From: Marsupella aquatica
Taxonomy: Eukaryota; Plantae; Marchantiophyta
NCBI GenBank assembly: GCA_973895155.1
Contig: OZ316899.1
Span: forward strand, 2,069,573-2,133,572
Direction: 5' to 3'
DNA: 64,000 nt
In this document: piece by piece, positions 28,086-46,872 of the stretch
Position numbering within the stretch: position 1 is the first letter of the stretch
Layout of the letters: the number at the start of each line of letters is the position of its first letter
Notes under the pieces: generated by a model
The model's input: only the letters and a program-made list of their open reading frames with translations
Database searches by the model: none
What the model was told of the DNA's origin: nothing
Translations under genes and position numbers: made by a program

Positions 28086-28346
28086 TCACAACGGCGGTAG
28101 GCCGCTTTGCTTACGATAGCTTCCAAGGATCTCTGATGCATTACCCAAATTTTCTTTCGGTTCCCAAGTACTCTCGGCCTGGTCATAGCCCGCCCACTTC
28201 ACCAAATACTCCAAGATTTGCCTTCCCAATTTGCGTTTGTAACGGTGGTCCAGAATTGCCTCCACCTCAAACTCCTCAGCGTCCTCCACCACCATGGTGT
28301 CCGGACGCAAGACCTGATCCCGGTTGGGATCATCGTCTTTGACAAA
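28086..28346 (-). pseudogene. Integrase C-terminal chromodomain
   Basis: EFEVEAILDHR...EYLVKWAGYDQAESTWEPKENL. It rejoins ...HVSRLKKFVK in frame when the MULE is removed. Confidence 0.9.
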
Positions 28347-28399
28347 GGGGAGAGGTAATCCATCAGTTATCAGTCATTGATATCAGTCACCCCCCTTTT

Positions 28400-28880
28400 T
28401 TTTCTCTAATCTCGGAGACCTCTCCGAGATGGCGACAGTTTTTTTTGGCAATCTCAGAGAGCTCTTCGAGATCCCTACCATTTTTTTGGCCATCTCGGAG
28501 AGGTCTCCGAGATGGCAACAATTGTTTTTGGCAATCTCGGAGAGGCTCTCCGAGATCCCAACACACTTCCAGGAGTATGTTGGAGACATGGTAGTTTGTT
28601 TGCTCACCATGTCAGAGAGCCTCTCCGACATACCAAGTCACTCCATTGCCATCTCGGAGAGCCTCTTCGAGATACCAAGTCTTTTTGTTGACCATCTCGG
28701 AGAGCCTCTCCGAGATACCAAGTCTTTTTGTTGACCATCTCGGAGAGCCTCTCCGAGATACCAAGTCACTTTGCAAACCATCTCGGAGTGCCTCTCCGAG
28801 ATACCAAGTCACTTTGCAGACCATCATTGACTTTCCCATTCCATTTCTAAGACCATCTCAAAGAGCCTCTCCGACATACA
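28400..28880. repeat. Left subterminal array of the palindrome TCTCGGAGAG(C/G)CTCTCCGAGA
   Basis: About 10 copies counted by eye. Confidence 0.9.
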
Positions 28881-29003
28881 AATACAAAAAATTTGCAAGT
28901 GATACACATCACATTCACTTTTCATATATATTATAATGTGTACACAGCAACACTTCATCATTGCTACCTTCTCTAAAGCTAACCCCTGTTGGCCACTACT
29001 TTA

Positions 29004-29627
29004 TTATGTTATCTGATATGTGCACAGGTCATAAATAATCTTCTTTCGCAAGTTTCCTACCTGGCTGCCATCAAAATCCATAGGAGCATCTCGACTTATG
29101 CACTCTGCATAGTTAAGGATAAATACCCCACAATTTACACTATCTTCTTGTGATGGAAGGCCTGACACTAAAGTTCTAGGCCAGTTGTTTGCATCTGGTG
29201 AGGGCATGCCTCTTTGACTTGCTTCATCCTCGACATACCTTGTTAGAGTATACATGAGATACTCATTTCGAGCCTCCCAAAAGTTTCCTGATTTCTCCCA
29301 AAGCGAATCTAGGAACAACACCTCTTTTCCAGTTAAATCAATCACTGCCAACACCCAATGCTCCCTGTTTGCCTGGTGGATAGGGACCAATATCCTGTCA
29401 TAATCAAATATGTTTTTTGTTTTGGTCCATCGAGCAACATTGGCAAAACAGTATACGGGCGTTGAGAGCAACGTGTAGAATGTTGTGATGAAAAATGCAC
29501 ACTTTGGATAGCCTCTTGATCTCCCCCTAAACTGCAACAAGGCCAAGTATGCATCGATGATATCTGAATGTAGCCATTGAGCTCCTGTTCTTCCTTCAGA
29601 CAAGCATCTCATTGACGCCCTGGTCAA
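29004..29627 (-). CDS. Ulp1-like SUMO protease (peptidase C48) domain
   Basis: WLHSDIIDAYL, FFITTFY, ILVPIH...HWVLAVID, LFLDSL, PSQEDSVNCGVF. The His-Asp-Cys triad and oxyanion Gln are intact. Confidence 0.92.
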   Translation of the reverse strand: MTRASMRCLSEGRTGAQWLHSDIIDAYLALLQFRGRSRGYPKCAFFITTFYTLLSTPVYCFANVARWTKTKNIFDYDRILVPIHQANREHWVLAVIDLTGKEVLFLDSLWEKSGNFWEARNEYLMYTLTRYVEDEASQRGMPSPDANNWPRTLVSGLPSQEDSVNCGVFILNYAECISRDAPMDFDGSQVGNLRKKIIYDLCTYQIT

Positions 29628-30859
29628 CTTGTAATCTACAAAGTTGAATAGTACTTCCTCGTCTGGGAGCTCTATGGATAGACATGTGGATACTATGTCG
29701 GAAAAGTCTTGAGAGCAGACTACTTTAGCAAATAACCCAGGTATCTGGGTATTCCCACCACGTGCTGCATAGGATTGAACAGCATGGCATTAGGCATCAT
29801 CTTCATCTGAGCTATAGGTCACAAAAGAAGGGTGAGCTATCTTATCACTATCACTGCTGACACTCTCACTTTCATTGTAGTCTACCTCTACTGCTCTATC
29901 ATCTACAAATCTTGATTTTCGCCTCTTTGTGTACTTCTCAGCTACACCCTTGAGCCGTTTGAAGGGGCGTGAATCAACAATCCCTTCTGCGTAAGTTGGA
30001 AGGCAAAATCTTTCTGGAGAGAAAGTTTTTGATGCTTCCTCCCATGCTTCACGGACTTTGTCCTTGTCCGATGTGTGCCATTGTTCGGACTCGATGTTCC
30101 TGTAGTGAACTGCCTATTGGTTAAGTAGACAGTTTAAGGTAATACCATAATAATGTGGAACTTCACATTTTTATTTATCCTCACCATGGCACAATGTAAA
30201 TTGCAAACTAACAACAAATGGGTTCTTGGATTCAACGTTTACTCACAATCCTGAGCATTCCCACCCTTGCCTTCTGCGGCATCCTCTCTGAATCAGACTC
30301 AAGGACAAGCTTCTTCCGCCCTTCAGGCTTCTTAGTCTCCTTGGCCTCCTCCTTCTTACTCTCCTTGGCCTCCGCCTTGGTCTGATTGCCCTGCTGTGTT
30401 GAAAGGAGTTTTGACACCACCGAAGCTGCTGACTCACCAAAGTAGTCATGCGCTTCCATCCCAAATACTAGTCGCCCACAATTATTGGCAGCTTTGTAGA
30501 TAGCACCAAAGTGGACATTCCAAGAAAATATGATATCGTTGGGACTGGTGATGTGCTCTATGATGCATTGCAAGGTTGCAGGCGATAAGGTTCCGGCCAA
30601 TTCGTCTCTCACTGCATCATCTTCCTTTGTAAAATTGGATAGAGCATTGCTCTTTCCTGGGCACAAATCACCAGTAATTGGCTTCATATGTACCTTTGGG
30701 AGGGTCACCTCTATACCCTTCATGGCGAATATATCCAAATGCAGATATTGAGCCTGTCACATCATGTAAAATAGATTCGCACTTGTTAGCAACACTGGCA
30801 ACACTAATTGCTAAACTAATCCGACATCGGTCCTACCTCTCTAAACCCTAAAAATCCTA

Positions 30860-31610
30860 CCTATCTCAGAGAGGCTCTCCGAGATCCATGCTACCTATCT
30901 CAGATAGGCTCTCCGAGATCCTACCTATCTCAGAGAGGCTCTCCTAGATCCATGCTACCTATCTCAGAGAGGCTCTCCGAGATGGATCCTACCTATCTCA
31001 GAGAGGCTCTCTGAGATCCATGCTACCTATCTCAGAGAGGCTCTCCGAGATGGATCCTACCTATCTCAGAGGCTCTCCAAGATCCATGCTACCTAACTCA
31101 GAGAGGCTCTCCGAGATCCATGCTACCTAACTCAGAGAGGCTCTCCGAGATCCATGCTACCTAACTCAGAGAGGCTCTCCGAGATGGATCCTACCTATCT
31201 CAGAGAGGCTCTTCGAGATCCATGCTACCTAACTCAGAGAGGCTCTCCGAGATGGATCCTACCTATCTTAGAGAGCCTCTCCGAGATGGATCCTACCTAT
31301 CTCAGAGAGGCTCTCCGAGATCCATGCTACCTATCTCAGAGAGGCTCTCCGAGATCCTACCTATCTCAGAGAGGCTCTCCTAGATCCATGCTACCTATCT
31401 CAGAGAGGCTCTCCGAGATGGATCCTACCTATCTCAGAGAGGCTCTCCGAGATCCATGCTACCTATCTCAGAGAGGCTCTCCGAGATGGATCCTACCTAT
31501 CTGAGAGAGCCTCTCCGAGATCAATGTTACCCATAAGGGAGAGGGTGTCCGATATCGTAATTGCGGACACATTTTTCAACTATCTCGGAGAGCCTCTCCG
31601 AGATGACTTC
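30860..31610. repeat. Intronic tandem array (~32-33-bp unit) around the same palindrome
   Basis: About 20 copies of CTACCTATCTCAGAGAGGCTCTCCGAGAT(CCATG/GGATC). Confidence 0.92.
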
Positions 31611-33979
31611 TATTGAAATGCCAAAATTGAAGTGAACTTACAGCTTTTTTGCTTGACGCCATGTAGCAAGGTGTGTCATTCCAAATGGTGAATGAGTCAA
31701 TGTGATCCAACTTCTCAGCCCAGTCAATGTGAAGGTACTCAAAGATTGAGCCTGTGTGGGCAAATGAACCACTGTGCACAATGCACAGGAAACCGTCGTT
31801 TGTGAGTAGAGAGTCTGCCAATGTCATCGCCACTTCTAGGTCACTGAGCCGAAATCTATTCCACACCGGAACATTATTTTCAGCCTGCGCTATGCGATAA
31901 TCTGTCCCTAGCTGAACAAAGATCATATCACAACCATGGCCCTTAGGTACACCATCAACTATCCAACCTTGTTTTCGCAAGCCAGCCAACTTCAATTTCT
32001 TACACCAGTCCCGGAATTCCCTCATGAATGGAGGGAGAGGCAACTTTCCCGTGGTTGGCTGATATTTGTCCTTCAGCCAAGAAGAACACTCTAGTAAGGT
32101 CATATGCTCTTTTGCATGGCAAAATCGCAGGGCAGATGTAATAGCATGAGAGGGCCGAGGTACTCCAAGAATTTCGCAAAGATCATCCTCCGGAATTTCT
32201 GGGGCTTCTGTTGAAACTGGCTTCTTTGTGGGTTCGTCTATCCTCTTGTCGGCTTTCTTCTTTGGCCGACTGGTTGGCTTACCAGAGATTTGTGGTTTGG
32301 TTGGGGTCCACTCGGGGTCCCGCTTGGGGTTGAAAGGTCAGGCTCCTCCTCCTCCTCATGGCCCTTTGCATTGTCCTCGGTGGCCATCCCATCCTCCTCT
32401 CCATTGTCCCCACTCACCGCTTTCTCATCCTCCTCTCCATTGTCCCCGGTCTTTCTTGGCTCCATCTTCTCATCCATCGGACGACGTTTGCTTGAGGTAG
32501 ACCCTGGGGTTCCAAACTTTTCCTTACTTTTTTCTGCAGAACAAAGTAAGGAGTTTAGTTATCATTTTACAATGATACTATCTCGGAGAGGCTCTCAAAC
32601 ATATGCCAGATGTACAATGCAAGCTAGGGTGTAAACCTTACCAGGAGTGCCTTGTTCTGAGGTGGTGTCTTCTGATTCCTTTTCTTTCTTCCCCCGAACC
32701 TTCTTCCCATCATACTCTGGCTCTCCAAGAGGCAAAATGGCCTCCAAGTCCAATGCAGCCTTTGTCGACAGCTCAAGATCTCCCAACTTTGAAGGTGCAA
32801 AAAGGTTGTCTGGTAGTTTCCCCTCCTTTAGGAGGTTGGCAGCTTCCTTCTCTTCGGGCGTAATGAACTCATTCCAATCATTGAACTCCATGAACCATGG
32901 ACAATTTTGTCTCTCCCAGTCTGAAAAGACTCTTGCTGCTGGCTTCAGCCCATCTGTTGGATACATTGACAGCGGGCCTTTCTCCGTCATCCATGCAGTC
33001 AGAGCACTTGGTAACACTTTGAAAGTAGAGGCTCCAATGCTCTCCTGATGAAGTAAATATCTGACCACACACCTCTTTGCACGCTTCATCCACACATCTT
33101 TGCTTTGCTTTGCTGGATTCCACATCTTCTTGCCCTCCTCATAGGACCGAGTCTGTACAAATTGCTTGTACATCTTGTTGTGAAACTCAACAAACTCGTC
33201 TTTGCTTCCATTGAAGTTCTGCCACTCACCAGAATCATATGCACTCTCGGCAAACTCTGACATTATCAAACTGCCAACATGGGCAATGTAACACCACATT
33301 GACCACACTAGCAACCAAGCTCTCACTGCTGAATCACCATATACATCTGGATGGTGGTGTCGCTTCTTCTCCTCCGCGGTTGAGAAATGAACGCGGAGTA
33401 ACTTGTTTTGACACTCAGCAGGCATCACCGCACTTGCAAACAATTTAACTCGATCCAACCCCACTTGCACTTGTGGCCGATCTTTTTGTTTACTCTGCAA
33501 CTGGTGCAGCTCCTCGGCAATCTCCAGAAACTCCTCTCCATTTGCTGGATTGACAATCTGAGTAAACTTCTGCATTTTGCCCTCCCAAGACCTACAAGCT
33601 TCACTCGTCATGAGTGCGGTTTCCTTTTGGAACTTATCCAAACTCCAGGCATGGTCAATTGCAGCATCGGCTGCCATCTCCTTCGCAAGACGAATCCTCC
33701 CGTCTTCAATATTATTCCACGACATGATGTACACAGCAACATCCTTTGTCATGCACTTGCTATACCATGTCTTTCCATGCCCATGGCTTCTTGCTGCTAA
33801 GAATCTAGCATAACCATCCGGATGAAGCAATGTCTGATACTCCTCCAAAGGTGTCATCAACAGCTTCTTCACCCTGTCTGCATCGGTCAACCAAGATGTC
33901 TGCACAACGTTTGCGCTTATCCTGCATAAAGAAGCGACAAATGTTGGCGTCAAAGGCTTCATACCTGAAAATTACATCT

Positions 33980-34185
33980 CTCTTGGAGATGCTCTCTGAG
34001 AAGGCATGGACATCTCGGAGAGGCTCTCTGAGAAGGCATCGCTCTCCAAGAAGGCATTGATATCTCGGAGAGGCTCTCCGAGAAGGGAAGGTTTATCTCA
34101 GAGAGCCTCTCCGAGATAGCATTTTGAGAGCCAAACATTGTATGTGTGTATGTATCTATCTCGGAGAGGCTCTCCGAGATAGGAT
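33980..34185. repeat. Intronic cluster of the same palindrome
   Basis: About 5-6 copies inside predicted intron 1. Confidence 0.85.
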
Positions 34186-34959
34186 TGCCTATGTGGGTGC
34201 AAAAAAACAACACCTGCAAGAACAACCAAAAACCAAGGGGGCGGAAACTTACGCGTTGAGGCCGTGCATTGCCTGCTCAATCTTCCTAAATCCTTGTTTT
34301 CCAGGCTGTAGAAGAGAGAATCTCACGCAAGGGTGGTACTTCTGCTCGTCAGGATACTCTTCAGCCACTTGTCTCCATGCATTCAGGCGATGATTTCCAT
34401 CAAACACCCAAAACATCTTACCCTTCAAAACGTGAAACTCCTCGTACTCATCACACTCCATCTCAAATTTTGCGTTAGCTTGTTCCCATAGAGGGTCCCA
34501 ATCCGCGGAAAATTCAGACATGGAGTGGGTGGCGTTATGCGCATTGGTCTCTGATATGTGGAATTCCAAAAACTTGTCCACATACCCATTCTTCACGAAG
34601 TCCTTCTTCATCTTCAGAATGGAGCTCTGTTGGAGAGTCCGAACTGCCTCCATTGTCATCAAACGACATAGTGGAATCCGAGGTGGCTCTCTGGGCTTCC
34701 CACTTGGTTCAGCTCCAAATGAAAGCAAGTACTCCCCAACAATCCCTTCGAATGCACCTTTGTTCAGACGTTCAGCAGACACATTTTCAAAGTTCAGAAC
34801 CTTCGGCTCCAGCTTCTTCACTGTGTGAGTTTCCCGACCACTGGCGGTGCTCTCTGCTGTCTTTGATCTGGTCTGCCAACCAGACGATGAAGGAGAGGGA
34901 GTGGGTTGCTTCCTCTTCCCTGTCATTTTCAAATCTCACCAACTACTGAATTGCACGAG

Positions 34960-35520
34960 CGCAACTTGCACAACACTTGCACCACCCACAGCTCAGTCGC
35001 AGCAAGCTCAATCACACCGCTTGCACAGCACTCGCACTCGCACCGCCATAGCTCACCGCACTCAATCGCACCGCTTCTAGCACTCGCACCGCCACAGCTC
35101 AGTCGCAGCAAGCTCAATCACTGGCAGTGGCACAACACTCAATCGCACCGCTCGCACAGCACTCGCACTCGACCGCCACAGCTCACCGCACTCAATCGCA
35201 CCGCTTCCAGCACTCGCACCGCCACAGCTCAATCGCAGCAAGCTCAATCACTGGCAGTGGCACAACACTCAATCGCACCGCTCGCACAACACTCGCACTC
35301 GACCGCCACAACTCACCGCACTCAATCGCACCGCTTCCAGCACTCGCACCACCATAACTCACTCGCAGCAAGCTCAATCGCACCACTTGCACAGCACTCA
35401 ATCGCACCGCACAACTACTCACACTCACAATCGCACTCAATCGCACCGCACTCACAATCGCACTGCTTCCAGCACTCGCACCACCACAGCTCACAGCACA
35501 CAGCTCATAGCACATAGAGC
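34960..35520. repeat. C/A-rich short-unit tandem repeat upstream of the ParB-like gene
   Basis: Reiterated CACTCGCAC / CAATCGCACCGC / CACAGCTC units. Confidence 0.85.
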
Positions 35521-36099
35521 GCGGAGAGGGAAAGATCACAAAGCAACTTACGCTCTCCAAGAAATATGAGGTAAATTGCATCCGCACTCGCACTCGCTTG
35601 GCCTCAATTGCTCGCCTTTCAAATGAGGAAAGGCGAGAGATGGCGGGGACTCACCAAAGTAGTCATCATCATTATTAGGCAACGGAAGATCTAGGGGGAT
35701 CACAACTGACTTCACTATCGCCGTCACGCAGGTTGAGTCCCATCCAAGCAACGGGAGATCTATGGGACCACTCATTGATTACAAGTGGTAGGGGCCACGG
35801 GAGGAAGTTGACATGTTAGCAGTTTATTGGCTTATATGTTGTCGTACTCTGATAATGATGAATGCCTAGATTTGACTCATGTCAGAGTCGCAACACTGAA
35901 GTACCTATACAGATGCTTTCATTATTACTACCCCTTCATGCCATAATGTCCTTGGTACGATTGATTCCAGACCAGATAAGATTTCCTATCATTCCTTGGT
36001 ATTAATGAGTGCGATCGTTGAATGACTGGATTTAATTCCAAAAAATATTCAGTACTTGCACGACATGTCAGGCCAGTCTCAAGTTCCAGATTGTCTCCG

Positions 36100-37180
36100 A
36101 GATATGTCACGCCCCCATGTCAGATAAGCTCTCCACTCTGACATGTAAAGTGGGGACTTAAGTCGGAGAGGCTCTCCGAGATGACATGTAAAGTGGGGAC
36201 CTAAGTCGGAGAGGCTCTCCAAGATGACATGTAAAGTGGGGACGTAAGTCGGAGAGGCTCTCCGAGTTGACATGTAAAGTGGGGACGTAAGTCGGAGAGG
36301 CTCTCTGAGATGACATGTAAAGTGGGGACGTAAGTTGGAGAGGCTCTCCGAGTTAACATGTAAAGTGGGGACGTAAGTCGGAGAGGCTCTCCGAGTTGAC
36401 ATGTAAAGTGGGGACGTAAGTCGGAGAGGCTCTCCGAGATGACATGTAAAGTGGGGACGTAAGTCGGAGAGGCTCTCCAAGTTGACATGTAAAGTGGGGA
36501 CGTAAGTCGGAGAGGCTCTTCGAGATGACATGTCATGGAGGACCCATGTCAGAGCCTCTCCAAAATTGAATATTACACAAGATCAGACCTTGGAGAGGCT
36601 CTCCAAGATGACATATCAGGTTGGTGATAACTTTGGAGAGCCTCTCTGACAAATATTGGGCCTAATCCTTGCTACACACCTGAAGATGGCATCTCGGAGA
36701 GCCTCTCCAACATCCCTAAACCCTTCATACCTGCGCAAGGTGGTATCTCGGAGAGCCTCTCCAACATGGGTCAAGGCTACATACCTCCGCAAGATGGCAT
36801 GTCGGAGAGCCTCTCCAAGATGAAACTTGGTGAGATCCGGTGCAAGATCTAATCTTGGAGAGCCTCTCCAAGATGGGTCGAGGCCTCATACCTGCGCAAG
36901 ATGGTATGTCGGAGAGCCTCTCCAACATGGGTCAAGGCTACATACCTCCGCAAGATGGCATGTCGGAGAGCCTCTCCAAGATGAAACTTGGTGAGATCCG
37001 GTGCAAGATCTAATCTCGGAGAGCCTCTCCAAGATGGGTCAAGGCCTCATACCTGCGCAAGATGGTATGTCGGAGAGCCTCTCCAAGATGAAACTTGGTG
37101 AGATCCGGTGCAAGATCTAATCTCGGAGAGCCTCTCTAACATGGGTCGAGGCTTCCAGATGGCATCTGAGAGAGCCTAAT
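36100..37180. repeat. Intergenic palindrome arrays (~40-bp unit, then ~41/61-bp units)
   Basis: GACATGTAAAGTGGGGACGTAAGTCGGAGAGGCTCTCCGA about 10 times, followed by GTCGGAGAGCCTCTCCAAGATG-type units. Confidence 0.9.
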
Positions 37181-37244
37181 GGACACCCTAAACTTGCTGT
37201 CAAAGGTTCTTGGATGTTGGTCCAATAAACTTAGTCACTGTCAA

Positions 37245-37715
37245 TAACAGTTTTCACGCTCACAAGGGTACGTTGTCAAGAAGGATTCTTACATATTCAA
37301 CGAGGGAAGAATATTGTAACAATTTTTACGCTCAGTCTGGGCGATAAGGTACTATGACAAAACAATCTTGACATATTCAACAAAGAAAGAAGCAAGTCTA
37401 ACAATTTTTATGCTCTATCTAGGCGGTAAGGTACTCTGACAAAACAATCTTGACATTCAACAAAGAAAGAAGCGAGTGTAACAGGTTTTACGCTCGGTCT
37501 GGGCGATACGGTACTCTGACAAAACAATCTTCACATATTCAACAAAGAAAGAAGCGAGTGTAACAGTTTTTACGCTCTATCTGGGTGGTAAGGTACTCTG
37601 ACAAAACAATCATAACATATTCAGAAAGAAAGAAGCGACTCTAACAGTTTTTACGCTTTGTCTGGGCGATAAGGTACTCTAACAAAACAAAGTCATAAGA
37701 ATCAATAACAGTTTT
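37245..37715. repeat. ~81-bp AT-rich tandem repeat (~6 copies) upstream of the transposase
   Basis: TAACAGTTTTTACGCTC..TCTGGGCGATAAGGTACTCTGACAAAACAATC..ACATATTCAACAAAGAAAGAAGCG. Confidence 0.88.
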
Positions 37716-39825
37716 CAAATACTGTTTGCTGATTAAGTTACACTCTTGAGAAACAAAGAGGAATTGAGCAAGCCAGAAAGGCAATAACATCCCTTACATG
37801 AACGAGGCATCTCTTGGTACATGCCACTTGAACTCTCTTGGTGCTCAACATTAGTCTTTCTTCAAGTGGTTATCATGGCTGGCCGTGTGAGGATCACGTT
37901 TCCAGACAATGGAGACGTTGTTGTGCTAGCGACTGATGGTGTTGTTCGGCATACACCAGACAACGAATTAGCTCGTCGGTTCGATGTTGAGATTGGGGAG
38001 TGGGCACTCTTTGAGGCCGGCGATGTCTTACCATTGATTGAGGCAGACTCAGAGGAGAGTGGAGAGGAAAGAATATGGCATCTGAAAAGTGAAGTTTCAT
38101 ACGTCCTTCAGCAGAGGGTGTACTTTGTTCCTCTTACTGAAGTTGGTTTGCAATCTCAAACTCGAGAGATTTCAGAGTGGCCGGCAGAGGTAGAGCAAGC
38201 CGAATTTCTTGAAAGTGTTGTTGCTGCAATGCTGAAAGGGAAAGGCACTTCGCGATGTGTAAAGGCTGCCCATTCCATTCTCAGAGTGCATTATCCACAA
38301 CGAGTCATGACTCTGCCGGAATGGTATGATGGGGATTGCATTTTTGAGCTCCCCCCATTCACAGGAATGTACACAAAGGGTGCCTTCTTCTTGGGTATGG
38401 AGCGGAGAAATGACTGCTACTTGTGGAGCAAGCTCATCGAGACAGGGGCCCAAATTGGACCCAACCTGAACAAGGGAGGCTTCAAGTATAAGATTGGGAA
38501 TGTGAGATGCCTGGGCTCTTTGCAATGTCCACATTCAGATTGTCCGGCTTTTACAAGTAAGAATGAGCGCAATTGCACATAATGGCAGCGAGATAGGGGT
38601 GGGAGAAATGAGGTTCCATTTCCTGTTGGGCGACTAGTTCCAGCAGAGAGTGTGATTTGCGCCTTTTGTGATCGGCCTCCTAAGTGTATAGCCAAGTGTC
38701 TAGCCGAAATGTTCTACATAACTCCGACCTCTCATGACCATTACATTTACAAGCACATGACACGTGTTGCTATGCATGTTGGGAGTCACTCACATCCGGC
38801 CAAATTTGTTCTCAAGAAAGATCGAAAAGCTTTCTTACATAAGTTGATGGAGGAGAAATTGAAGAAGAATCCTCATGCAATGCCGTCTGTGATCAAGAGT
38901 GACACAATTAAAGCTCTAAGGGATATTTTTGATGACAAGGTTGCTGGGATTGTCACATTTGAGGAAGCATGGGATCTGAATGAAACATTAGCGATCCTAT
39001 CAGATCGATCAGTTGTAAGATCTATGATACAGAGCATACGCAAGTATACCCATGCCTCATCCGACCTCCAAGTCATCCTTGATCTTCAAAAAGAAACAAT
39101 GTTTTCATTTGTCTAGAGCACTCTATTTCTAAACCAGAAGCTAGATACAGATGAGCGCCCACACATTTTCAAGATGACTGTAAAGGGTCTAGGGTCTGGA
39201 ATCGATCTCATTCGAAGGATGCAGCCTGGTGGAGATCTACAAGACTCATGGGTGATGTTTGATGTCATGCATCGGATGACTGAGAAGCAATGGTGCACAA
39301 TGTCAGCTCATGTATACGACCACCTATACAGAGGTCTCTGCACAATTTTTGTATGCGAGCTAGTTTCGGAAGATACTGCTGCACTACAAACTGCATGGAA
39401 GGTCATGAAGCGAGTGCGTAAGGCAAATGGGCTTGACAATGTTATGTTTTGTGGGTTCATTGCCGATAATGCTGCAGCTGGGTGGAATGCAGTTCGAAAC
39501 ACATTCTGGGATGGAAGAGTTAATTCTCAAAAGGAGCGATCTGATGCATTTCACTGGGCACAATCAGTGGAGAAGATGACAAAGAAATGCATTCTTCTAG
39601 GCAAAGCAGTTGAGCATAAGGAGCTTCTGGATTCATTGAGGGATGCTGCCAATGTGGTTCTTGCATTTCGGACTTTTGAGAAGATGAAGGATTGGTGGAA
39701 AAATGGGAATGCAATCAAAGGAAAAACCAAGTCACTGGAGACATGGCTTTCGTGGTGGATTGTGCGGTTCTCCCAGTGGGGAAACTTTATTCGGCTGGTA
39801 AGTCTATGAATTCTTAGTAATATTC

Positions 39826-40070
39826 TATCTCGGAGAGCCTCTCCGAGATGGAACATATGGGTAATCTCCGAGATGGAAGACGTGGGTCATCTTTGTCGAG
39901 GCTCTCCAAGATGGAAGAGGTGGGTCATCTCGGAGAACCTCTCCTAGATGAAATAAATGGGCGACTTGGAAGACATGTTAGAGAGCCAACTTTTGTTTTG
40001 TAACACGGTTCATCTTAGAGAGGCTCTCCAAGATGAAACACTGGTCATCTTGGAGAGCCTCTCCAGGATG
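39826..40070. repeat. Palindrome cluster inside the transposase intron
   Basis: About 6 degenerate copies between the GTAAGT donor (39806) and the acceptor near 40150. Confidence 0.8.
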
Positions 40071-41489
40071 GACCCCGTTGGACATGTTGCAGATGTACAA
40101 GATGACCCATGTACATTTTTTGGTAATACTCTTTTCTTTGATTTTTGTGTAGGACATGGACAGAACTAAGTCTGCATTGATGCTGAACCATAGCGGGGCA
40201 GAATCCGTGCATGTCGCGATGCGCCGATGGTCTTCCACAACAAAGATTGGGATAATGCAATCTTGTATAACGGATGCAACCCGTGCATCAAATCAAATTG
40301 GTGCCCTTGTGAACTACACGACCCACGGGAGGAAGGGCCGTGGCCCAAGCCTCTTTGAACTTCGTCTCCGAGATGCCAGGATGGTTGGGAATGTTAAGAG
40401 TTTCTTCCCAAAGTTAAATACGGTGATGACTCAACCGGAGATGGTTGAATATGCTTCGGGGGACCCAATTCCTGGTGACTATGAAACTCAACGAATGCCG
40501 GCGCGAGGCAAGGTTCCAGCTGATGCTATTGCAGTAGAAGACTCCCATCGCGATGATGTCATTCTAGTAACGTGACCTAAAAAGCGGAAGTTCAAGGGGA
40601 TTTCAAGCCAAGATGCAAACTTGAAAAGTACCATTCCTGACGTGGTCGACTTGTCAACCTCGTTAGACTCTCCTACAGGCTCTGGTGGATCAGATGTGGT
40701 GATTTTGGAGAGCCCAGTACAGCGTGCGACAAGACGTGTCCCTCCACCATCAACCCCAAGGAGGTCAACTCGAGTGTCTCCTCCGCCCCCAACAAGGGCA
40801 ACACGTGTTCCACCTCCTCCAACCCCAACAAGGTCAATACCAAGGTCACCCCCTGTTTGTCCACCAACGCGGTTTGCTGAACCTTTGCATAATAGAGGCC
40901 AACAAAGACAAGTTCAGGAGAGCAATGTGATGCCAGGAATGTTGTTTTTGTCTCGCATCAGTCGCCATGGAAGTGGTCCCGCTTGTAGAGGTGCCTTCAA
41001 AGGCACAGAACGTCCAGCATGCGGTCTATACATCAAGGAGGTGGGGGTTTCGTCATGCAACGTTGGGTGTGGTAGGATTGTGCTTATTGGCTGGGAGCAG
41101 TTACAAGGATCCAAACATTCCATAAAAGTTTTGGTTTTGCCCAAACAACAAGTGTTGCCAGAAATCTTCCATGGCATATGTTACTGGGCGGCTGCCCCCA
41201 CTACCGGAGAAGGTCCCAGTTGCTCGAGGAACCTATCTAACACAAGATGAAGTTGATTTTCTCCATGTGAATGAATTGAATGTGGTACAGACCATCATTC
41301 CTGGTGATTCAATGGTGAGTCCTGGCGATGTAATTGTGGACTTGAATAGTTACCCTGAGCAGTTGGATCCATTGAAGCCTGATGTCAGGCTGAGCCGGCG
41401 CAATGGCCGCTTACGGCAAAGGAGATCGGTTGTGACGGCAGATGCAAAGAAACGTATTGAGAGTGCTGTGACGCCGATGACATGGTCCT

Positions 41490-44100
41490 TATTCTATAAT
41501 CTGAGTAACTAGGTTGCTGTATGCAAGGAGTAGCTATTGATACCGCATAACAATTAGCAAGCTGGCAAGAATAAGGGCAATCATGGTGTTAAGAGTAGGG
41601 ATAAAGGTATTTCAGCTTGAACACAACCAAGGCAGACACAGTTGAGGTAGTCACTGTCAAGGCCACAAAGGAGAAGCTGGGGAAGAGAGGAGGAAGCGAG
41701 TCTCCATAACTAAATATGAAGTTGTGTGGTATGGTGATTGTTCTCATGATAAAATTTGAATGTCTTGGGTGTGTAGCTTCATTTTGTTAGTTAGGTTAGT
41801 GGTTCATAGTCTAGTCTTAGAATGTTAGGGAAATAAAAGGCTATGTCGCGCGTGGTTGGCAACCATATCTCGTTCAATATGTCACCAAATCCGGATCTGT
41901 AAAGAGCATTGGAAAGATCTGGTCAAGGCGAGTAAAATCGATATAAAACACTCGGGAAACGGAGGTGTATTAAGGAAGATACGGTCTGATTAGTGTGACG
42001 GGTTAACTTGTGGCCGGAATTAGCGGATTCGGCTTCAGTTTCGGGTTAACCCAAGCTCGGCCATGGCTTAGCTTAGGTAAGCACGGCTTCAACTTAGCTT
42101 AGGTAAGCACGGCTTTAGCTTATCTCAGGTAAGCACGGCTTCAGCTTAGCTCAAGTAAGCACGGCTTCAGCTTAGCTCAAGTAAGCACAGCTTCAGCTTA
42201 GGCTTAACCCGGGTTCGGATTAGATGGATCCCGGGTTAGACTTAACTCGGGTTAGCCTAAACTCGGGCTCAGGTTAGCATAGGTAAGCTCGGGTTCGGGC
42301 TTAGCTTAGGTTAGCGGTTAGCGGATAGCGGATAGCGGATAGCGGGTAGCGGCCTAACCCGAGACCACGGGTTAGCTCTACTCGGGTTAGATAGGATAGC
42401 TAGGTTAGCCGAACTCGGGTTAGCTATGTAACTCGGGTTAGCGCAGCAGTGAGTACCCCCTCTCGGTTGCGGGGGCATAACTCTCTGTGTATTTGACCAA
42501 ATCGGCTATAATTGACCTCGTTGGAAAGAGGAGCTCAAGCCGCTTCCAACGCTGCTATCCACGCAGCAAATGGTTGAATAGAGAAATCAGGAGAGGAGGC
42601 GCAAGCTCACAAAAACCATGGAGGAGGGCCAAATCCGAAGTACATAGCCAATTCGAGATAGAAATAAAGTTGCGAGTTAGGGTTCAGTAGTTAGAGATAG
42701 TGGCGGCTCTGTTAGGGCTGGGATGGGGCTCCAGCAGCGTAGTATCCACCCATTTGGGCTCAGTATGAGAGTATATAGAGCAGCCCCCGATAGAGGCAGG
42801 GGGGGACTTCAGTTGTGTGATCTCACTTAGACTGAGTAGCAGGGAGGAGCTCTGTGCAAGCAAGGCTGGACTTGGACGCTGCGTGTTGGGGAGAGCTTGG
42901 TTGTGCTATTACTCAGGGAGTAATCAGCCAAGCTTCACAGCTGCAACGGGTTGCTAGGTTTGCGAGTTAGATTGTGGCTCTTTCTAGTGGGCAACACAAC
43001 TGGGTTCTTTTCCCCCGATATAGAGCCTTGGTGATAGGTGATGTATTGGTGATTGTAAACTGTGGGGAGGATGTCAATTTGATTTGTGGTGAGCACGTTA
43101 GGGAGGCTGAGACACTGATTGAGGGGCAGCAGGAGGAGCATTTACAGTTCAGTCTGGCAAGGCTACGTGATCCATGGGGAGTCCCGGCCTTTGTCTGGTG
43201 GAGAGCACTAAGGGATCTATGGCCAGAGCTGAGCTTGCAGGGCAAGCATGAGGCCGGGCCTCATTGCAGTCTGGGGTAGATCGTCGTTAGGCCTGGTACC
43301 AGCTTTGAAGTCGAGTCAACTGTGCATGCGTAACTTGACATTCGGAAATGGAGGTGTGAGATCTGTATGTGCCCCCAAGAATGAAGTGCAGTGAAGGAGG
43401 TTGAGTTCAGGATTGAGTTTGCAAGGCAAGTACGGGATTGGTTCGAGTCCAATCTGCCGTCGCAATCTGGAGTGAGCCGGGCTCAGGTTCAGGATTGAGC
43501 TTGCATGGCAAGCACGGGGCTTGCGGGGCAAGCACGTCGCAATCTGGAGGAGACAGCCTTTGGGCCTAGTGTTCGGATCAAGTGTTCTCAATGAACTATT
43601 GTGCACATCTTTGAATCTAATTGAGTTTTCCTCTTCGGCCTCATTTCTCTCATGGATGTGTGTGTGTGTGAGGCAATCTGAGTGTATGATGGGACTAGCA
43701 GCGCCACTGAGAGGTGTACAGGGTGCATTGAAGCGGGCTGGGTGAGGACTGTCATAGCTCTGATTGCTGAGAGTGGAATGGCAGAGTGGTGGGGCAATGG
43801 CTTAGAAGTCCCTAAGCCGGGAATCAGTCAGGAGTCACTGGTTTATGGGTACATTCCGGCGGCGGAATAGAAACATACCTATGATAGTAAGCATACGTAT
43901 AGACCTATGCGCACCGTAGCGCTAGGCCCTGTGTGTACGGGCCCGATATGAAGACCCCTTCTCACCAGAACTATCATGAGCACAGATCTGATCCCCAACC
44001 TTGGTTCCTTGGGATTGAGCTTGGGTGATGTGTGATAGAGTCTTGCTATGATAGTCTGGTGTTAAGGGCATAAATTGGTGTTTACCGGCCTTCACAACAT
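41490..44100 (+). mobile_element. LTR-like insertion related to family B, inside the transposase gene (boundaries approximate)
   Basis: Shares GATAGAGGCAGGGGGG, GAAGTCCCTAAGC and GTACATTCCGGCGGCGGAA with family B. The transposase rejoins as ...PMTWS|LRDPRVQG. It has internal ~26-bp tandem repeats at about 42060-42200. Confidence 0.6.
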
Positions 44101-44599
44101 CCCTTCGTGATCCTCGGGTACAAGGGGATGGTTTTGGCACCCATAGTGACATTTTTGGTGTTAAGACCCATGTCAATCGCGTGACAAGTGCCAAATCCGA
44201 GTTGATGAGGTTCACTTCCATGACTCGAATTGAAAAAGGGAATGCAACTGGCTTACGAGTGGTACTTTCCAACACTCATCGTGACCGCAATTCAGCCCAT
44301 TGTGTACAGATATGTGTGTTCCCAACTTGCTCTTGTCAAGATTTCATGAGAGATACTGGAAGATACTTCTTTCCTTGCAAACACTTGTATTGGTGCTATA
44401 AAAACATTTGTGGACGAGATCTAGAGAGCGACCAAGAGATCCACCAGCCAATCTTGACACTTAGCGAGGTTCGTAAATTGGTGTCAAATGTAGCAAGCTC
44501 AGGGTGAATGCATGTCAAAGATGTTTCGGGTTTAGTGGGTAGAACGATACACTTTTGTATCCTTTCATAATAATAAATGTTCAAGATTTCAAATGATGT

Positions 44600-45195
44600 T
44601 GATCCCATCTCGGAGAGGCTCTCCGAGATTCCAACCCAGTGTTGATCCCATCTCGGAGAGGCTCTCCGAGATTCCAAGTGACGTTGATCCCATCTCGGAG
44701 AGGCTCTCCGAGATTCCAACCCAATGTTGATCCCATCTCGGAGAGGCTCTCTGAGATTCCAAAACCAGTGTTGATCCCATCTCGGAGAGGCTCTCCGAGA
44801 TTCCAAGTGACGTTGATCCCATCTCGGAGAGGCTCTCCAAGATTCCAAGTGATGTTGATCCCATCTCGGAGAGGCTCTCCGACATTCCAAGTGACGTTGA
44901 TCCCATCTTGGAGATGCTCTCTGAGATTCCAAGTGATGTTGATCCCATCTCGGAGACGCTCTCCGAGATTTAAACCCAGTGTTTTTGGCAATCTCGGAGA
45001 GGCTCTCCAAGATTCAAACCCAGTGTTGATCCCATCTCGGAGAGGCTCTCCGAGATTGCAACAATTGTTGGAGACTTTGGTGACCAATCTCGGAGAGGCC
45101 TCCGAGATTGACACAAAATAGGACGTCAATCTCGGAGATGCCTCCGAGATTGATTAAAAAAAAGGGGTCAATCTCGGAGAGGTCTCCAAGATTGT
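44600..45195. repeat. Right subterminal palindrome array (~41-42-bp unit)
   Basis: GTTGATCCCATCTCGGAGAGGCTCTCCGAGATTCCAA..., roughly 15 copies. Confidence 0.92.
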
Positions 45196-45253
45196 CCAAA
45201 AAAATGTTGGTGACTGATATCAGTCACTAATAACTGATGAGATTGCTCCTCTC

Positions 45254-46872
45254 TTTGACAAACTTCTTGAGCCGGCTAACATGGTAGCTTTTCCCCCCGC
45301 CCATTTCTTTGGGTGTCTCCAACACCACCAAAACCGGATTATCCTTGTGGGCCCATTGTATAATGTGATAGGGCCCCGCATATCTGGGAGCCAGCTTCCT
45401 ACTTATGTTCCCGTGGTATTGCTCAGGTCTCAACTGCAACCAGACGCTCTCCCCAATTTCAAGGCTTACCCGGCGTTGATGTTTATCCCCTTGGTCCTTG
45501 TACCAACTTTGGGCAAGGGTCATACCTTGGTAGCCGCTTCCACAACTAGGCGCTGCTCTCAAATAAAATCGTCCGTAGAAGGAACCTTGCTTTCCGTTCG
45601 CCAAGCTTCCGGATTTATAAACCAGGAGGGCGCCATTGGCGTCCTCCTTGTGGCCAACACAAACGGCGAAAACCCCATCGCCGAATGCTTGGTCGAGTTA
45701 TACCTAAACTCGGCCATTGTTAAATGCTTTGCCCAATCCTTTTGATTGGCCGTCACAAAGTGACGCAAGTAGTCCTCCACGATACCATTCACCCGTTCCA
45801 TTTGGCCATCTGTCTCATGATGATACACTGATCCCCTAGTCAGGTCCATTCCGGATAACCGGAACAACGCCTTCTAGAAATGGCCTGTGAACTTGGTATC
45901 GCGATCGGACAGGATATGCAATGGCAATCCCCATTGTCAAAAGACATTGTCAAATACTAGACCGGCAACCTTTCGGGCCAAAATCATTTTTGTAGTACGC
46001 AAGAAATACGTCATCTTGGAAAAACGATCCACGATTGTTAAGATGGAGTTACTGCCGTGGAACTCAGGTAACCCAACAATGAAGTCCATGGAGATAGACT
46101 CCCATGGAGCCGCAACTATTAGTAAGGGTTGCAGCAATCCTCCTTTTGCCCTATAGAACGTTCGGTTCTTTTGGCACAAGTAACAACTTTGCACGTGGCG
46201 AAGGACCAATTGCTTCATGTCTGGCCAATACACATCTTGCAACATGCTACGATACGTAGCAACTTGTCCTCCATGCCCTCCCTAGGGCGAGTCGTGGTAC
46301 TTTTGCAGAACCTCTAACCTTAGAGACTCTGGTCTGTACACACGCCTCTGCTTGTATCGCCATAGCTGAACATTATGCATCGTATCCAACCCCAATGACA
46401 CATGCCTTACCTTGCCCTGGCTACCCCCATTGCTTTGCCATTCCTTAGCTAACTTGTCATCCCCATACGCCGTAGCCAGAACCTTTGGCCACTCAGATTC
46501 GAGCATCGTGATCCCATTGACACGATGATGGTCCTTACGCGATAATGTGTCAGCTGCCGTGTTTGTCTTTCCAGGAGCGTGATGGACTTCAAAATCAAAA
46601 TCTGCCAAGAACATCTGCCAACGCATTTCCTTGGGGTTCAGCCTTGGCTTAGAACCAAAGTACCCGGCCGACGAGCTATCTGTGTGGATTACCACTTTGG
46701 GACCGTTCTTAAGGCAAATTTCCCACTTCTTTAACGCATAGATCACAACATACATTTCCCTTTCCGGTGTGATCCAATGATTTTCCAACTTACATGACTC
46801 GAAGGCCACAGGACGCCCGTTCTGGTGAAGATAGGTGCCAATGGCATAATCACTTACGTCTGTCCAAATCAC
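45254..46872 (-). pseudogene. Chromovirus RNase H and integrase (fragmented)
   Basis: IWTDVSDYAIG, EREMYVVIYAL, HHCC zinc finger (YHDSP..GH...C.LC), WESISMDFIVGLP, SDRD.KFT, TDGQMERVN and KLAPRYAGPY. Confidence 0.9.

Follow-up and report, generated by a model that had tools for sequence, protein, structure and literature searches.

The window, the whole 64,000-nt stretch of DNA analyzed here, contains a 16.9-kb Mutator-like element (MULE) at 28347-45252 that is a decayed copy from an old land-plant MULE lineage. Two divergently transcribed genes lie within it, a transposase gene (+) and an accessory gene (-), and both are broken in this copy. Homologous elements that carry the same accessory gene, in a liverwort and three environmental contigs, are new here. 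As the palindrome differs from one related element to another, they look like an undescribed transposon self-recognition system. Judged from sequence, the accessory protein may be a VANC/KorB-like self-recognizing regulator acting on the palindromes of its own element, a reading given a probability of about 0.5.

The element and its insertion site

The borders of the element carry a 10-bp TSD and imperfect TIRs of ~45 nt, the latter found by aligning the left end locally to the reverse-complemented right end. The TIR contains a motif, TGATATCAG, that also occurs at the ends of the Riccia element. With the element left out, the flanks form a single unbroken gypsy integrase-chromodomain ORF across the junction, and the insertion is thus a true one. 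The sequence-only reading had proposed a MULE of this size bounded by TSD and TIRs, with two divergent genes inside; borders, TSD, TIRs and the restored ORF agree on the former, and both genes were found. Positions below are those of the window, with the strand given where a feature has one.

28337-28346: left TSD, CTTTGACAAA, identical to the 10-mer at 45253-45262
28347-45252: MULE, a decayed, non-autonomous copy (TSD, TIR, MULE-type transposase, nonsense codons, frameshifts)
28347-28392, + strand: left TIR (GGGGAGAGGTAATCCATCAGTTATCAGTCATTGATATCAGTCACC), aligned to the reverse complement of the right end
45208-45252, - strand: right TIR, from local alignment
45253-45262: right TSD, CTTTGACAAA; rejoining of the flanks restores a continuous ORF
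37821-41509, + strand: MULE transposase gene remnants, with in-frame stops TAA 38580, TAG 39114 and TGA 40573
44055-44504, + strand: probable terminal exon of the transposase gene; its SWIM zinc-finger signature is weak and sub-threshold (PF04434 E 0.036-0.15)

The transposase, interrupted by three nonsense codons, is 37% identical over 552 aa to the transposase of the Riccia locus.

The accessory gene

Exons 1 to 4 (E1-E4) and a C-terminal tail appear to form one gene, of which E1-E4 are collinear with Riccia proteins of 1191-1207 aa. The exon joins are predicted from DNA, and the four sequencing runs located were all genomic. A slash marks splice junctions below.

34253-34926, - strand: exon 1, 674 nt, basic N-terminus and ParB/Srx-fold domain (~34758-34253) with WVFDGNHRLNAW (AF2, Foldseek, VIA, 210 relatives)
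32642-33921, - strand: exon 2, 1280 nt, conserved ~430-aa region, collinear with Riccia P0023 and P0155
31642-32533, - strand: exon 3, 892 nt (893 in siblings), acidic linker and N-terminal MTase-like half
30243-30753, - strand: exon 4, C-terminal MTase-like half with degenerate motif I, DIIFSWNVHFGAIYKAANNCGR, and a 1-nt deletion at 30285
29790-30099, - strand: exon 5a, conserved C-terminal tail, stop TAA 29792-29790
29004-29764, - strand: Ulp1/SENP protease (C48) exon, preceded by the conserved acceptor CCTATGCAG/CA (PF02902, SENP2)

The lengths first proposed for exons 1 to 4 (674, 1280, 892 and 507 nt) were reproduced exactly, with GT..AG borders. That proposal also invoked a single 1-nt deletion. 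Such a deletion is present in exon 3 near 32307, where an extra C behind this position in sibling copies opens the full 893-nt exon; the same exon holds the degenerate motif IV, CDMIFVQLGTDY. It is not the only one, since nearly all sibling contigs have an extra C behind 30285, which places a second 1-nt deletion in exon 4. The end of exon 4 is formed by two overlapping donors, T/GTGAGT (30246) and GA/GTAAAC (30242).

The conserved accessory gene closes with a short acidic tail, whose stop, TAA 29790, precedes Ulp1. This tail (…LPTYAEG…FVDDRAVE…YSSDEDDA) has homologous counterparts in Riccia P0023, P0162, P0165 and P0166 and in the related contig L002, and the tail stop lies at the same place in the Riccia homologues. 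A single ORF of ~1490 aa, as read earlier, is contradicted by this in-frame TAA, which lies unreported within the former 1110-nt 'exon 5'. The earlier E4-E5 junction was rejected as an accident of the mutated copy, its acceptor AATAG/ being absent from L002.

Predicted domains of the accessory protein

By modeled fold and by motif, the exon 1 product is a ParB/Srx-type nucleotide-binding domain. Its AF2 model has a pLDDT of 85.6, with 95-98 in the core, and the best 40 Foldseek PDB matches are all ParB/Srx, including Srx, ParB-CDP/CTP, Noc, PadC, KorB, SbnI and SerK. VIA likewise returned ParB/Srx at Z 7.3-7.6 over ~95 residues at 2.7-2.8 A, a Z of 7.6 being middling by the tool's own caveat. 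Among the AFDB neighbors of the model, which bear the names ParB, DGQHR or ParB/Sulfiredoxin, is a 1005-aa protein that combines ParB with an N6_N4 MTase. The exon 1 product has 210 relatives; across 83 relatives the GNHR motif (G177, N178, H179, R180) is conserved to at least 90%, and in the lineage GxHR is invariant. These matches bear out the ParB/Srx assignment made from the letters. HMM profile searches for the domain gave 0 matches to ParBc in Pfam or to the PDB. The exon 2 region (~430-450 aa) has no match in Pfam, PDB or the atlas, and the accessory protein showed no HTH or other DNA-binding domain.

The domain encoded by E3-E4 is predicted to be a beta-class N6/N4 DNA-methyltransferase fold without the catalytic DPPY. 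The best match of the fold model, which was built on a Riccia liverwort paralogue and not on the intron-split domain of the window, is CcrM (E 2.6e-11), followed by M.BceJIV, M1.HpyAVI, M.RsrI, M.MboIIA, the rotifer N4CMT and M.PvuII; its AFDB neighbors are methyltransferases. PF01555 is sub-threshold or at threshold in the Riccia paralogues. Motif IV reads DLPSG, DMPSG or QLGTD in the alignment, and DPPY is absent from every aligned member, as expected for the dead methyltransferase that had been suggested. Motif I, the SAM-loop, reads FAGGWGAT (Riccia paralogues) or NVHFGAI and is also lost in the window's element.

The protease exon matches PF02902 (E 8e-27) and SENP2 (E 3e-29 over the entire catalytic domain) and conserves His, Asp, Gln and Cys, in line with the intact Ulp1 first described. 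In the window's element family it lies directly behind the accessory-gene stop, and the Ulp1 of L002 is 58% identical to that of the window. A constitutive ParB-MTase-Ulp1 fusion, the form originally claimed, does not hold: the gene stops before Ulp1, and neither the Riccia nor the environmental elements have Ulp1. In a fern homologue the corresponding position is occupied by an FCP1/NIF phosphatase. Ulp1 may at best be an alternative terminal exon. In both the +C consensus and L002 the phase-1 E4-Ulp1 junction keeps the reading frame, and the two-donor splice model takes its basis from phase compatibility in just these two related elements.

Palindromes in this and related elements

The 21-bp palindrome TCTCGGAGAGSCTCTCCGAGA has 65 matches at ≤3 mismatches against 0.01 expected, all between 28535 and 45055. 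At the same threshold the remaining 47 kb of the window has 0 matches, and no comparable repeated palindrome of another kind occurs there. The repeat noticed at first reading is therefore real and lies wholly inside the element. At ≤4 mismatches the MULE holds 68 copies, 0 of which overlap exons. The copies vary solely at two CpGs, and one 21-bp core is retained by arrays whose periods are 34, 43 or 54 bp and whose spacers are unrelated.

28400-28876: left subterminal array of 20/21-bp palindromes, 42-43-bp period
30864-31603: intron-3 array, 21 copies at ≤4 mismatches, 34-bp period
33981-34179: intron-1 palindromes, 5 copies
36161-37141: intergenic arrays (bidirectional promoter region), 43-bp and 54-bp periods
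39828-40068: palindromes in a probable intron of the transposase gene, seen as a non-coding gap
44608-45200: right subterminal palindrome array

An accessory-gene homologue with its own highly over-represented palindrome was found at four further loci: L001 from the liverwort Riccia, L003 and L004 from one environmental sample, and L005 from an environmental contig. The Riccia locus has 28 sites against 0.01 expected and a homologous divergent transposase; L003 and L004, which have one palindrome in common, have 13 sites against 0 expected, and L005 has 20 against 0. As in the window's MULE, these palindromes lie in introns and upstream DNA. Those of L003 and L005 are scattered at irregular spacing, with the exact pattern in 9/13 and 18/20. 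The association of gene and arrays in other copies, on which the sequence-only reading was staked, holds at all four loci. The accessory gene, its exon order, the intron-1 position and the divergent layout are kept at 25-40% identity among the window's genome, the liverwort and the environmental contigs, and the gene family also occurs in Adiantum ferns and environmental contigs.

Proposed function and alternatives

The ParB/dead-methylase protein is posited to be a dimeric sequence reader, which would recognize the 18-21-bp CpG-containing palindromes of its own element. These differ between element families and are retained in subterminal DNA, in introns and in the promoter spacer that the two genes share. 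Recognition would mark 'self' copies for a cis-specific activity, most likely VANC/KIU-like or KorB-like transcriptional activation or anti-silencing. With the exon-4 donor shifted by 4 nt, Ulp1 would be spliced onto exon 4 and form an alternative terminal exon. DeSUMOylation of silencing factors, as supposed in the sequence-only reading, would be a putative activity. The effector domains appear swappable, Ulp1 in the window's element and the phosphatase in the fern, which argues for such a self-reader.

A strong rival, possible and distinctly less probable, is that the palindromes are transposase-binding sites, used for transposase-mediated self-activation and for building the transpososome. 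Another role would then fall to the ParB/dead-MTase protein, for example NTP-gated end bridging, protection of excised DNA, or sequence-unspecific interference with host DNA methylation. Both subterminal regions beside the TIRs hold arrays, the palindromes of L001 and L003 come with a homologous transposase, and the accessory protein has no detected DNA-binding domain. Moreover, binding to subterminal motifs followed by hypomethylation is known for transposases and TnpA: the AtMu1 transposase, like Spm TnpA, recognizes motif clusters and causes hypomethylation of its own element (bioRxiv 10.64898/2026.08.24.746577). Because a transposase is present with the palindromes every time, co-occurrence cannot tell which protein reads them. 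However, most copies lie in the accessory-gene introns and promoter and not at the ends, a distribution reported for targets of VANC but not for those of transposases. Perfect 18-21-bp dimeric palindromes also suit dimeric readers of the ParB/KorB or CcrM type, and the dead MTase fold in its own right provides a scaffold for DNA recognition.

Two other explanations are far less likely. Intact copies might retain an enzymatic MTase-like domain that deposits 6mA/4mC at the palindromes or acts on another substrate, so that the element would chemically mark its own DNA, as has been suggested for the ParB-MTase fusions of phages. The fold is a complete beta-class one, the Riccia paralogues retain the glycine-rich motif I and reach PF01555, and rotifers are known to have captured a bacterial N4C methyltransferase (PDB 8s9m, one of the fold matches); yet (D/N/S)PP(Y/F/W) is replaced in all aligned members, and motif I is gone too from the window's element, which makes this improbable. 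Slightly less probable still, the accessory gene could be a passive capture or a horizontally acquired passenger, and the arrays neutral slippage-prone satellites or sources of hairpin siRNA. MULEs often capture gene fragments, Ulp1 included (PMC13317346), the window's copy is mutated in both genes, and CpG decay of the palindromes shows that the element is methylated and silenced. Passenger status sits poorly with a gene, exon order, intron-1 position and divergent layout that persist at 25-40% identity, with one core shared by arrays of three periods and unrelated spacers, and with irregularly spaced L003 and L005 palindromes that are nevertheless largely exact.

Comparison with known systems

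In melon, rice, grapevine and Arabidopsis, MULEs that carry Ulp1 also have an intact-looking C48 domain (van Leeuwen et al. 2007, as cited in PMC13317346). Compared with the elements so cited, Ulp1 here is an optional last exon after the ParB/dead-MTase stop, and sister elements (Riccia, environmental contigs) are without it.

Fusions of ParB-CTPase and N6N4-MTase are common in phages (PMC12704722). Those of phages, prophages and plasmids have the same folds in the same order in a single polypeptide, and they are likewise tied to mobile DNA (PMC12704722; ParB-Tls loci, PMC4738411). The eukaryotic version differs in its introns, an extra ~430-aa insert and an acidic linker, in the loss of catalytic motif IV, and in its setting in a cut-and-paste transposon with putative cognate palindrome arrays. 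The searched text of PMC12704722 and PMC4738411 describes no land-plant or transposon-borne ParB-MTase. KorB/OB, ParB/parS and Noc/NBS resemble the present system in a ParB-fold N-domain, a GxxR-type motif and multiple scattered palindromes, several of them in promoters. In contrast to these, the accessory protein has no detected ParB-type HTH or C-terminal dimerization domain, a ParA partner is absent, the setting is eukaryotic chromatin, and CTP binding is putative.

Arabidopsis VANDAL/VANC and KAONASHI (VANC-Ulp1, KIU), with their anti-silencing genes, are, like the window's MULE, Mutator-superfamily elements with an accessory gene beside the transposase (PMC5735166, PMC13317346). Unlike VANC, the window's accessory protein combines ParB/Srx with a dead beta-class MTase, an unrelated architecture of probably bacterial or phage origin. 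Its motifs are perfect 18-21-bp palindromes with CpGs, whereas VANC motifs are 9-bp, asymmetric and in one orientation. The window's element has TIRs and VANDALs are non-TIR; the hosts of the ParB-like MULEs, in which the function is putative, are bryophytes and ferns and not Arabidopsis. VANC motif arrays occupy introns and upstream regions (PMC5735166) and VANC-Ulp1 (KIU) fusions exist (PMC13317346). The likeness extends to a short element-specific motif in introns, upstream and other non-coding parts, partly in tandem, to motifs that differ among related families, and to a Ulp1 domain on the accessory gene in some lineages.

The element and its insertion site

Elements of the Mutator superfamily are recognized by TSDs of 9-11 bp, TIRs and a MURA-type DDE transposase (PF10551) with a SWIM finger. 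The MULE in the window carries a minus-strand accessory gene and, divergent from it, a plus-strand transposase gene.

Boundaries of the MULE and nonsense codons in its transposase frame
28337-28346 and 45253-45262: TSD CTTTGACAAA, 10 bp, identical copies
28347-45252: MULE, flanked by this direct repeat and ending in imperfect TIRs
38580, plus strand: nonsense codon TAA
39114, plus strand: nonsense codon TAG
40573, plus strand: nonsense codon TGA

The TIRs are about 45 nt long and are adjoined by similar subterminal arrays. When the flanks are rejoined with one TSD copy removed, a single open frame runs from a Ty3/gypsy integrase through …HVSRLKKFVKDDDPNRD… to a chromodomain. Because the empty site restores the host ORF, the MULE is a genuine insertion into a chromovirus, and the TSD- and TIR-bounded element recognized by the sequence-only reading is confirmed. 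The insertion point falls in the linker between integrase and chromodomain of a minus-strand Ty3/gypsy chromovirus (27400-28346 and 45263-46300).

On the plus strand, the ORF pieces look like transposases of the MULE/ZSWIM RNaseH-like kind (score 0.94 in a language-model search of a protein atlas), all 10 of the 10 best named atlas clusters belong to the MULE clan (MULE/ZSWIM RNaseH-like), and identity with the transposase at a Riccia sorocarpa locus is 37% over 552 aa. The element is filed under Mutator because of its TSD length, its TIRs and these softer matches; Pfam gives no match to the catalytic piece at E up to 10, and the SWIM match (E 0.036-0.15) lies below the Pfam cut-off. Three nonsense codons interrupt the transposase, and the copy in the window is therefore not autonomous. 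Directly 5′ of the transposase ORF, at 37300-37700, stands a palindrome-free tandem repeat of five 80-82-bp units, which may be a promoter element. The SWIM-like last ORF is separated from the transposase body by about 2.5 kb (41510-44050) that lacks homology to the Riccia transposase and may represent either a nested insertion or a long intron; a 26-bp tandem repeat lies within it at 42027-42200. BLAST and family HMMs found no second copy or paralogue in the window.

A palindrome confined to the element

The repeated 21-bp palindrome noticed earlier in the MULE, TCTCGGAGAGSCTCTCCGAGA, is present 65 times at up to three mismatches, against 0.01 expected, in a scan of the whole window. All 65 copies lie within 28535-45055 and none in the remaining 47 kb. 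At up to four mismatches there are 68 copies, none of which (0/68) overlaps an exon of either gene.

Distribution of TCTCGGAGAGSCTCTCCGAGA copies at up to four mismatches
Subterminal regions: left 7, right 11
Spacer between the divergent genes: 19
Accessory-gene introns: intron 3, 21; intron 1, 5; intron 2, 1
Non-coding gap of the transposase gene: 4

The arrays have periods of 34, 42-43 and 54 bp, with an identical core and unrelated spacers. Positions 3, 6-10, 12-16 and 19 are near-invariant, and variation consists almost wholly of CG to CA or TG changes at the two CpGs. This is the decay signature of cytosine methylation, and thus the window copy has been methylated. A search of the rest of the window for palindromes with 8-bp arms and at least three occurrences found none.

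Structure of the accessory gene

The lengths proposed earlier for the first four exons are recovered from stop-to-stop frames and splice sites.

Exons of the accessory gene
34926-34253, minus strand: exon 1, 674 nt
33921-32642, minus strand: exon 2, 1280 nt
32533-31642, minus strand: exon 3, 892 nt (893 nt with a restored C)
30753-30247, minus strand: exon 4, 507 nt
29764-29004, minus strand: Ulp1 exon, behind the acceptor CCTATGCAG/CA (slash, splice point)

That exons 1-4 encode one predicted protein is supported independently; the Riccia proteins P0023 and P0155 (1191-1207 aa) align collinearly with E1, E2, E3 and E4. Many diverged sibling copies of the gene are present in contigs of four public runs, all of them genomic DNA without splice joints. 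Nearly all these copies have an extra C behind 32307, the addition of which opens exon 3 across 893 nt, and a second extra C behind 30285, with which exon 4 ends …SDSEEDAAEGKGGNAQDCE, followed by TAA. The single 1-nt deletion earlier invoked to balance the exons is thus confirmed in exon 3, and the second one, at 30285, had been missed. At 34986-35500, just 5′ of the ATG, a 130-bp tandem repeat is found, A/C-rich and some three units long, with sub-units of 25-53 bp (CACCGC…CTCAATCGCA); it is unrelated to the palindrome and produces a long, spurious ORF with many S, H, Q and T residues.

The 3′ end differs from the sequence-only reading, in which an 1110-nt exon 5 completed one frame of about 1490 aa. 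That exon holds an in-frame TAA at 29792-29790. The 103 codons ahead of it (…FCLPTYAEG…RFVDDRAVE…TYSSDEDDA) are homologous to C-terminal tails of Riccia proteins that stop at the same point (P0023, P0162, P0165, P0166 and P0170), the P0023 tail being …YVDDIAQED…ISSDEE-stop. The same stretch shares 54% identity with the corresponding ORF of L002, a related 1.4-kb contig in which the stop again stands just before a Ulp1 ORF. Since the Riccia and L002 tails end at the same place, the TAA is the gene's native stop and not damage. Readthrough of this stop into Ulp1 as a conserved route is rejected, as the tail and Ulp1 of L002 are in different frames.

Exon 4 ends in GTGAGTAAAC in the window element and L002, and in …GAGTAAGG in Riccia, and offers two candidate donors 4 nt apart (GA/GTAAAC and T/GTGAGT). 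Both in the consensus of the window family with the missing C restored and in L002, joining GA/GTAAAC to ACAG/G brings the tail into frame, and joining T/GTGAGT to the conserved acceptor CCTATGCAG/CA does the same for the Ulp1 exon. This phase compatibility in two related elements suggests that a single gene gives a conserved isoform with the tail and an alternative one with Ulp1, the latter in the window family only. In the window copy the deletion at 30285 breaks both junctions. The exon 4-5 junction proposed earlier (…ATT/GTGAGT to AATAG/GCA) is in phase 0 by accident of this deletion, and its acceptor AG is missing in L002; on both grounds it is rejected, and the 1110-nt exon falls with it. 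In L001, the Riccia sorocarpa locus, which is also decayed, no phase-compatible join was found from the donor GA/GTAAGG to the downstream tail exon.

Retention of the intron after exon 4 is predicted to end the protein at the TAA within the donor, matching short Riccia forms that end in …GDRE or …GEDE. The MTase-like exon ends in GAGTAA in three diverged elements (L001 13830-13850; window 30249-30238; L002 50-63), so placed that the stop codon overlaps the GTAA 5′ splice site; retention would shorten the protein and splicing lengthen it. A sibling copy in genomic contigs (organism B) has a 180-bp deletion at the place of 29790-29971, which takes the end of the tail exon and the stop region; it would bring tail and Ulp1 closer, and its ends are not intron-like.

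Domains of the accessory protein

Only Ulp1 is recognized in the gene by sequence, single-sequence Pfam and PDB searches with exons 1-4 having given no match. The ParB/Srx fold is revealed by structure prediction only: PF02195 (ParBc) has no match in the window protein or 83 relatives, the best recurrent Pfam family among the relatives is DndB (4 members, E 0.066), and an 83-sequence HMM profile of the domain did not find ParB among PDB sequences. Exon 1 has 210 relatives in a library of 1.8 billion proteins, and its model, made with 83 relatives, reaches a pLDDT of 85.6 overall and 95-98 in the core. The top 40 Foldseek matches in the PDB are nearly all ParB/Srx (probability 0.85-0.97) and include sulfiredoxins, ParB-CDP/CTP, Noc, PadC, KorB, SbnI and SerK. 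VIA-align gives Z 7.3-7.6 over about 95 residues at 2.7-2.8 Å against the CTP-binding N-domains of ParB, Noc and KorB; by the tool's own warning a Z below 8 is middling, and the assignment is made because the match list is uniform. AlphaFold-cluster neighbours of the model are named ParB, DGQHR or ParB/Sulfiredoxin, and they include a protein of 1005 aa under the name ‘DNA methylase N-4/N-6 domain-containing protein’. The exon 1 domain is thus predicted to have the ParB/Srx alpha-beta fold of the N-terminal nucleotide-binding type.

Proteins of this fold bind phosphate through a glycine-x-x-arginine motif at a strand-to-helix turn, which reads GERR in ParB, GCHR in Srx and DGQHR in DndB. In the exon 1 model DGNHR occupies residues 176-180, between a strand (172-176) and a helix (178-190), and its G, N, H and R are each at least 90% conserved among the 83 relatives. 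Read from secondary structure rather than residue-level superposition, its position appears equivalent to that of the ParB motif. A canonical ParB clamp combines CTP binding with an HTH DNA-binding domain, a C-terminal dimerization domain and a ParA partner. The 430-aa region encoded by E2 is conserved; searches of Pfam, the atlas and a PDB profile found no match to it and no recognizable HTH or dimerization domain, and ParA is absent from the element.

Beta-class MTases have a circularly permuted Rossmann fold with a catalytic motif IV, (D/N/S)PP(Y/F/W), and a SAM-binding motif I, FxGxG. The window's MTase-like pieces have no Pfam match; PF01555 is matched at or close to its threshold by several Riccia paralogues. 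Intron 3 divides the domain of the window element, and for this reason the fold prediction used the Riccia paralogue P0159, the model of which matches CcrM (2.6e-11), followed by M.BceJIV, M1.HpyAVI, M.RsrI, M.MboIIA, the rotifer N4C methyltransferase and M.PvuII, and AlphaFold clusters concur. The window's exons 3 and 4 encode a homologue of this domain (2.6e-10 for E4 against P0156). At motif IV of the alignment the Riccia sequences read DLPSG or DMPSG and the window sequence QLGTD, a departure from the catalytic consensus; motif I is kept as FAGGWGAT in the Riccia paralogues and replaced in the window by WNVHFGAI, which departs from its consensus. The beta-class matches and the altered motif IV therefore identify a beta-class fold without its catalytic motif. 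‘Trimethylguanosine synthase’, the automatic UniRef name of the Riccia proteins P0153, P0155, P0156 and others, is rejected, since Pfam and the fold point to a beta-class DNA N6/N4 MTase-like domain; it looks like a mis-annotation.

The Ulp1 domain matches PF02902 with 95 bits, the cut-off being 20.7 (E 8e-27), and aligns with SENP2 over the entire catalytic domain (E 3e-29), with HW, LDS, Q and NCG conserved. By this alignment, the His-Asp-Cys triad and the oxyanion Gln are intact. The ParB/Srx-type motif, the N6/N4-MTase-like fold and the protease with its triad had all been proposed from the sequence, and all three are upheld.

Related elements in other genomes

The same architecture occurs elsewhere, each time with a palindrome of its own. 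For instance, L001 (Riccia sorocarpa CM100801.1, 27409598-27433440) holds a homologue of the gene divergent from a homologous transposase, and its TIR-like ends have TGATATCAG in common with the window element. It contains 28 palindromes of the TCCRGCGRNNNYCGCYGGA type, against 0.01 expected, located subterminally, in the intergenic spacer and, in one case, within the gene. Two related palindromes, TCCGGCGAGSCTCGCCGGA and TCCAGCGGA-N-TCCGCTGGA, stand at different places: TCCGGCGAG-S-CTCGCCGGA lies in the spacer between the genes, and TCCAGCGGA-N-TCCGCTGGA is found subterminally at both ends. The former is identical to the window palindrome at 15 of 21 positions, the central GAG-S-CTC among them.

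Another example is found in environmental contigs. Two from one sample (L003 and L004) carry E1-E4 homologues and 13 copies of GCTAGCGCCGGCGCTAGC (0 expected), which lie 5′ of the gene, in the gaps between exon pieces and 3′ of the E4-homologous piece; in L003 a transposase lies upstream of the gene homologue on the other strand. A further contig, L005, has E1-E4 homologues and 20 copies of ACTAACGANNTCGTTAGT (0 expected), distributed upstream, in three introns and downstream. Although dispersed and irregularly spaced, these sites are mostly exact matches to their pattern (9/13 in L003, 18/20 in L005), which speaks for a constrained motif and against recent amplification in tandem. At 6035-6451 of L005, beside the element and on the opposite strand, is a DUF659 (hAT/ZBED-associated) ORF, possibly from a neighbouring hAT transposon. 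The association of gene and arrays proposed from the window copy thus recurs at L001, L003/L004 and L005, and the pairing of gene, transposase and family-specific palindromes is conserved.

Ulp1 is absent at L001, L003, L004 and L005. In the Adiantum capillus-veneris homologue P0082 (KAI5065344.1), an FCP1/NIF phosphatase domain (residues 955-1129; PF03031, E 2.4e-12) takes the C-terminal place that Ulp1 occupies in the window family, which suggests that members of the family can exchange their C-terminal effector. Named members of the family come from Riccia sorocarpa and two Adiantum species, and some AlphaFold neighbours bear accession prefixes that are presumably those of Chara braunii.

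Proposed recognition of the palindromes

With the element and its arrays, the folds, the lost catalytic motifs and the intact protease in view, the accessory protein may be considered a putative dimeric palindrome reader, contacting DNA via the dead methylase and/or the middle region, with the ParB domain as a possible nucleotide-dependent switch or oligomeriser. The output would be cis-specific activation or anti-silencing of cognate copies, which an attached effector (Ulp1 or NIF) might sometimes help. In its full form this proposal is tentative, with a probability of roughly 0.3: a phage-derived ParB plus (dead) DNA methylase, kept by a MULE lineage across early-diverging land-plant groups, would be an NTP-gated dimeric reader that loads at family-specific palindromes and delivers interchangeable effectors (a Ulp1 SUMO protease or an FCP1/NIF CTD-type phosphatase) to its own copies. 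Such a reader would be a previously undescribed, convergent counterpart of VANC anti-silencing. The main rival has the palindromes read by the transposase instead, as the AtMu1 transposase and Spm TnpA read their own clustered motifs (bioRxiv 10.64898/2026.08.24.746577); because both proteins co-occur with the sites, the two assignments are not separable. The earlier observation is mostly right, with its gene model partly wrong; the function suggested from sequence is a putative one that withstood the refuting check of whether gene and arrays are associated in other copies.

If the accessory protein is the reader, it would be the first ParB-type protein with cognate palindromic sites in eukaryotic chromatin, and a second, independently evolved answer to the problem solved by VANC, that of a transposon telling its own copies from the genome. 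A bacterial or phage ParB-methylase fusion would then have been recruited by a plant transposon, with catalysis lost and the DNA reader retained. The diversity of the palindromes, at least four distinct candidate cognates having been found, would in that case provide ready-made orthogonal protein/site pairs for effector targeting in plants. Even if the transposase binds the palindromes, the conserved accessory-gene family, which numbers more than 200 relatives, is a previously undescribed core component of a bryophyte/fern MULE lineage.

Comparison with known systems

In the available parts of the cited reports, VANC removes methylation and binds a 9-bp motif, which in its own VANDAL is clustered in tandem in upstream regions and introns (PMC5735166), VANC genes are in part fused to Ulp1 (PMC13317346), fusions of ParB-CTPase and N6N4-MTase are common in phages (PMC12704722), and the ParB-linked clades listed in the survey of eukaryotic adenine methylases are only haptophyte, chlorophyte and chytrid ones (PMC4738411). 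The ParB-fold survey, in its available text, makes no mention of transposons or plants (PMC12704722). Full-text literature searches returned no description of a MULE with ParB, methylase and Ulp1 genes, an absence that is not proof. Like VANC systems, the elements in the window and at L001, L003, L004 and L005 have an element-specific motif in non-coding regions that diverges between families. Unlike VANC, as far as the available parts of its descriptions go (PMC5735166; PMC13317346), the window protein has ParB/Srx and MTase-like domains. Palindrome loading by the accessory protein would be a eukaryotic analogue of ParB-parS and KorB-OB. The element is best described as a member of the known class of MULEs with accessory self-recognition, here built on a ParB/dead-methylase protein.
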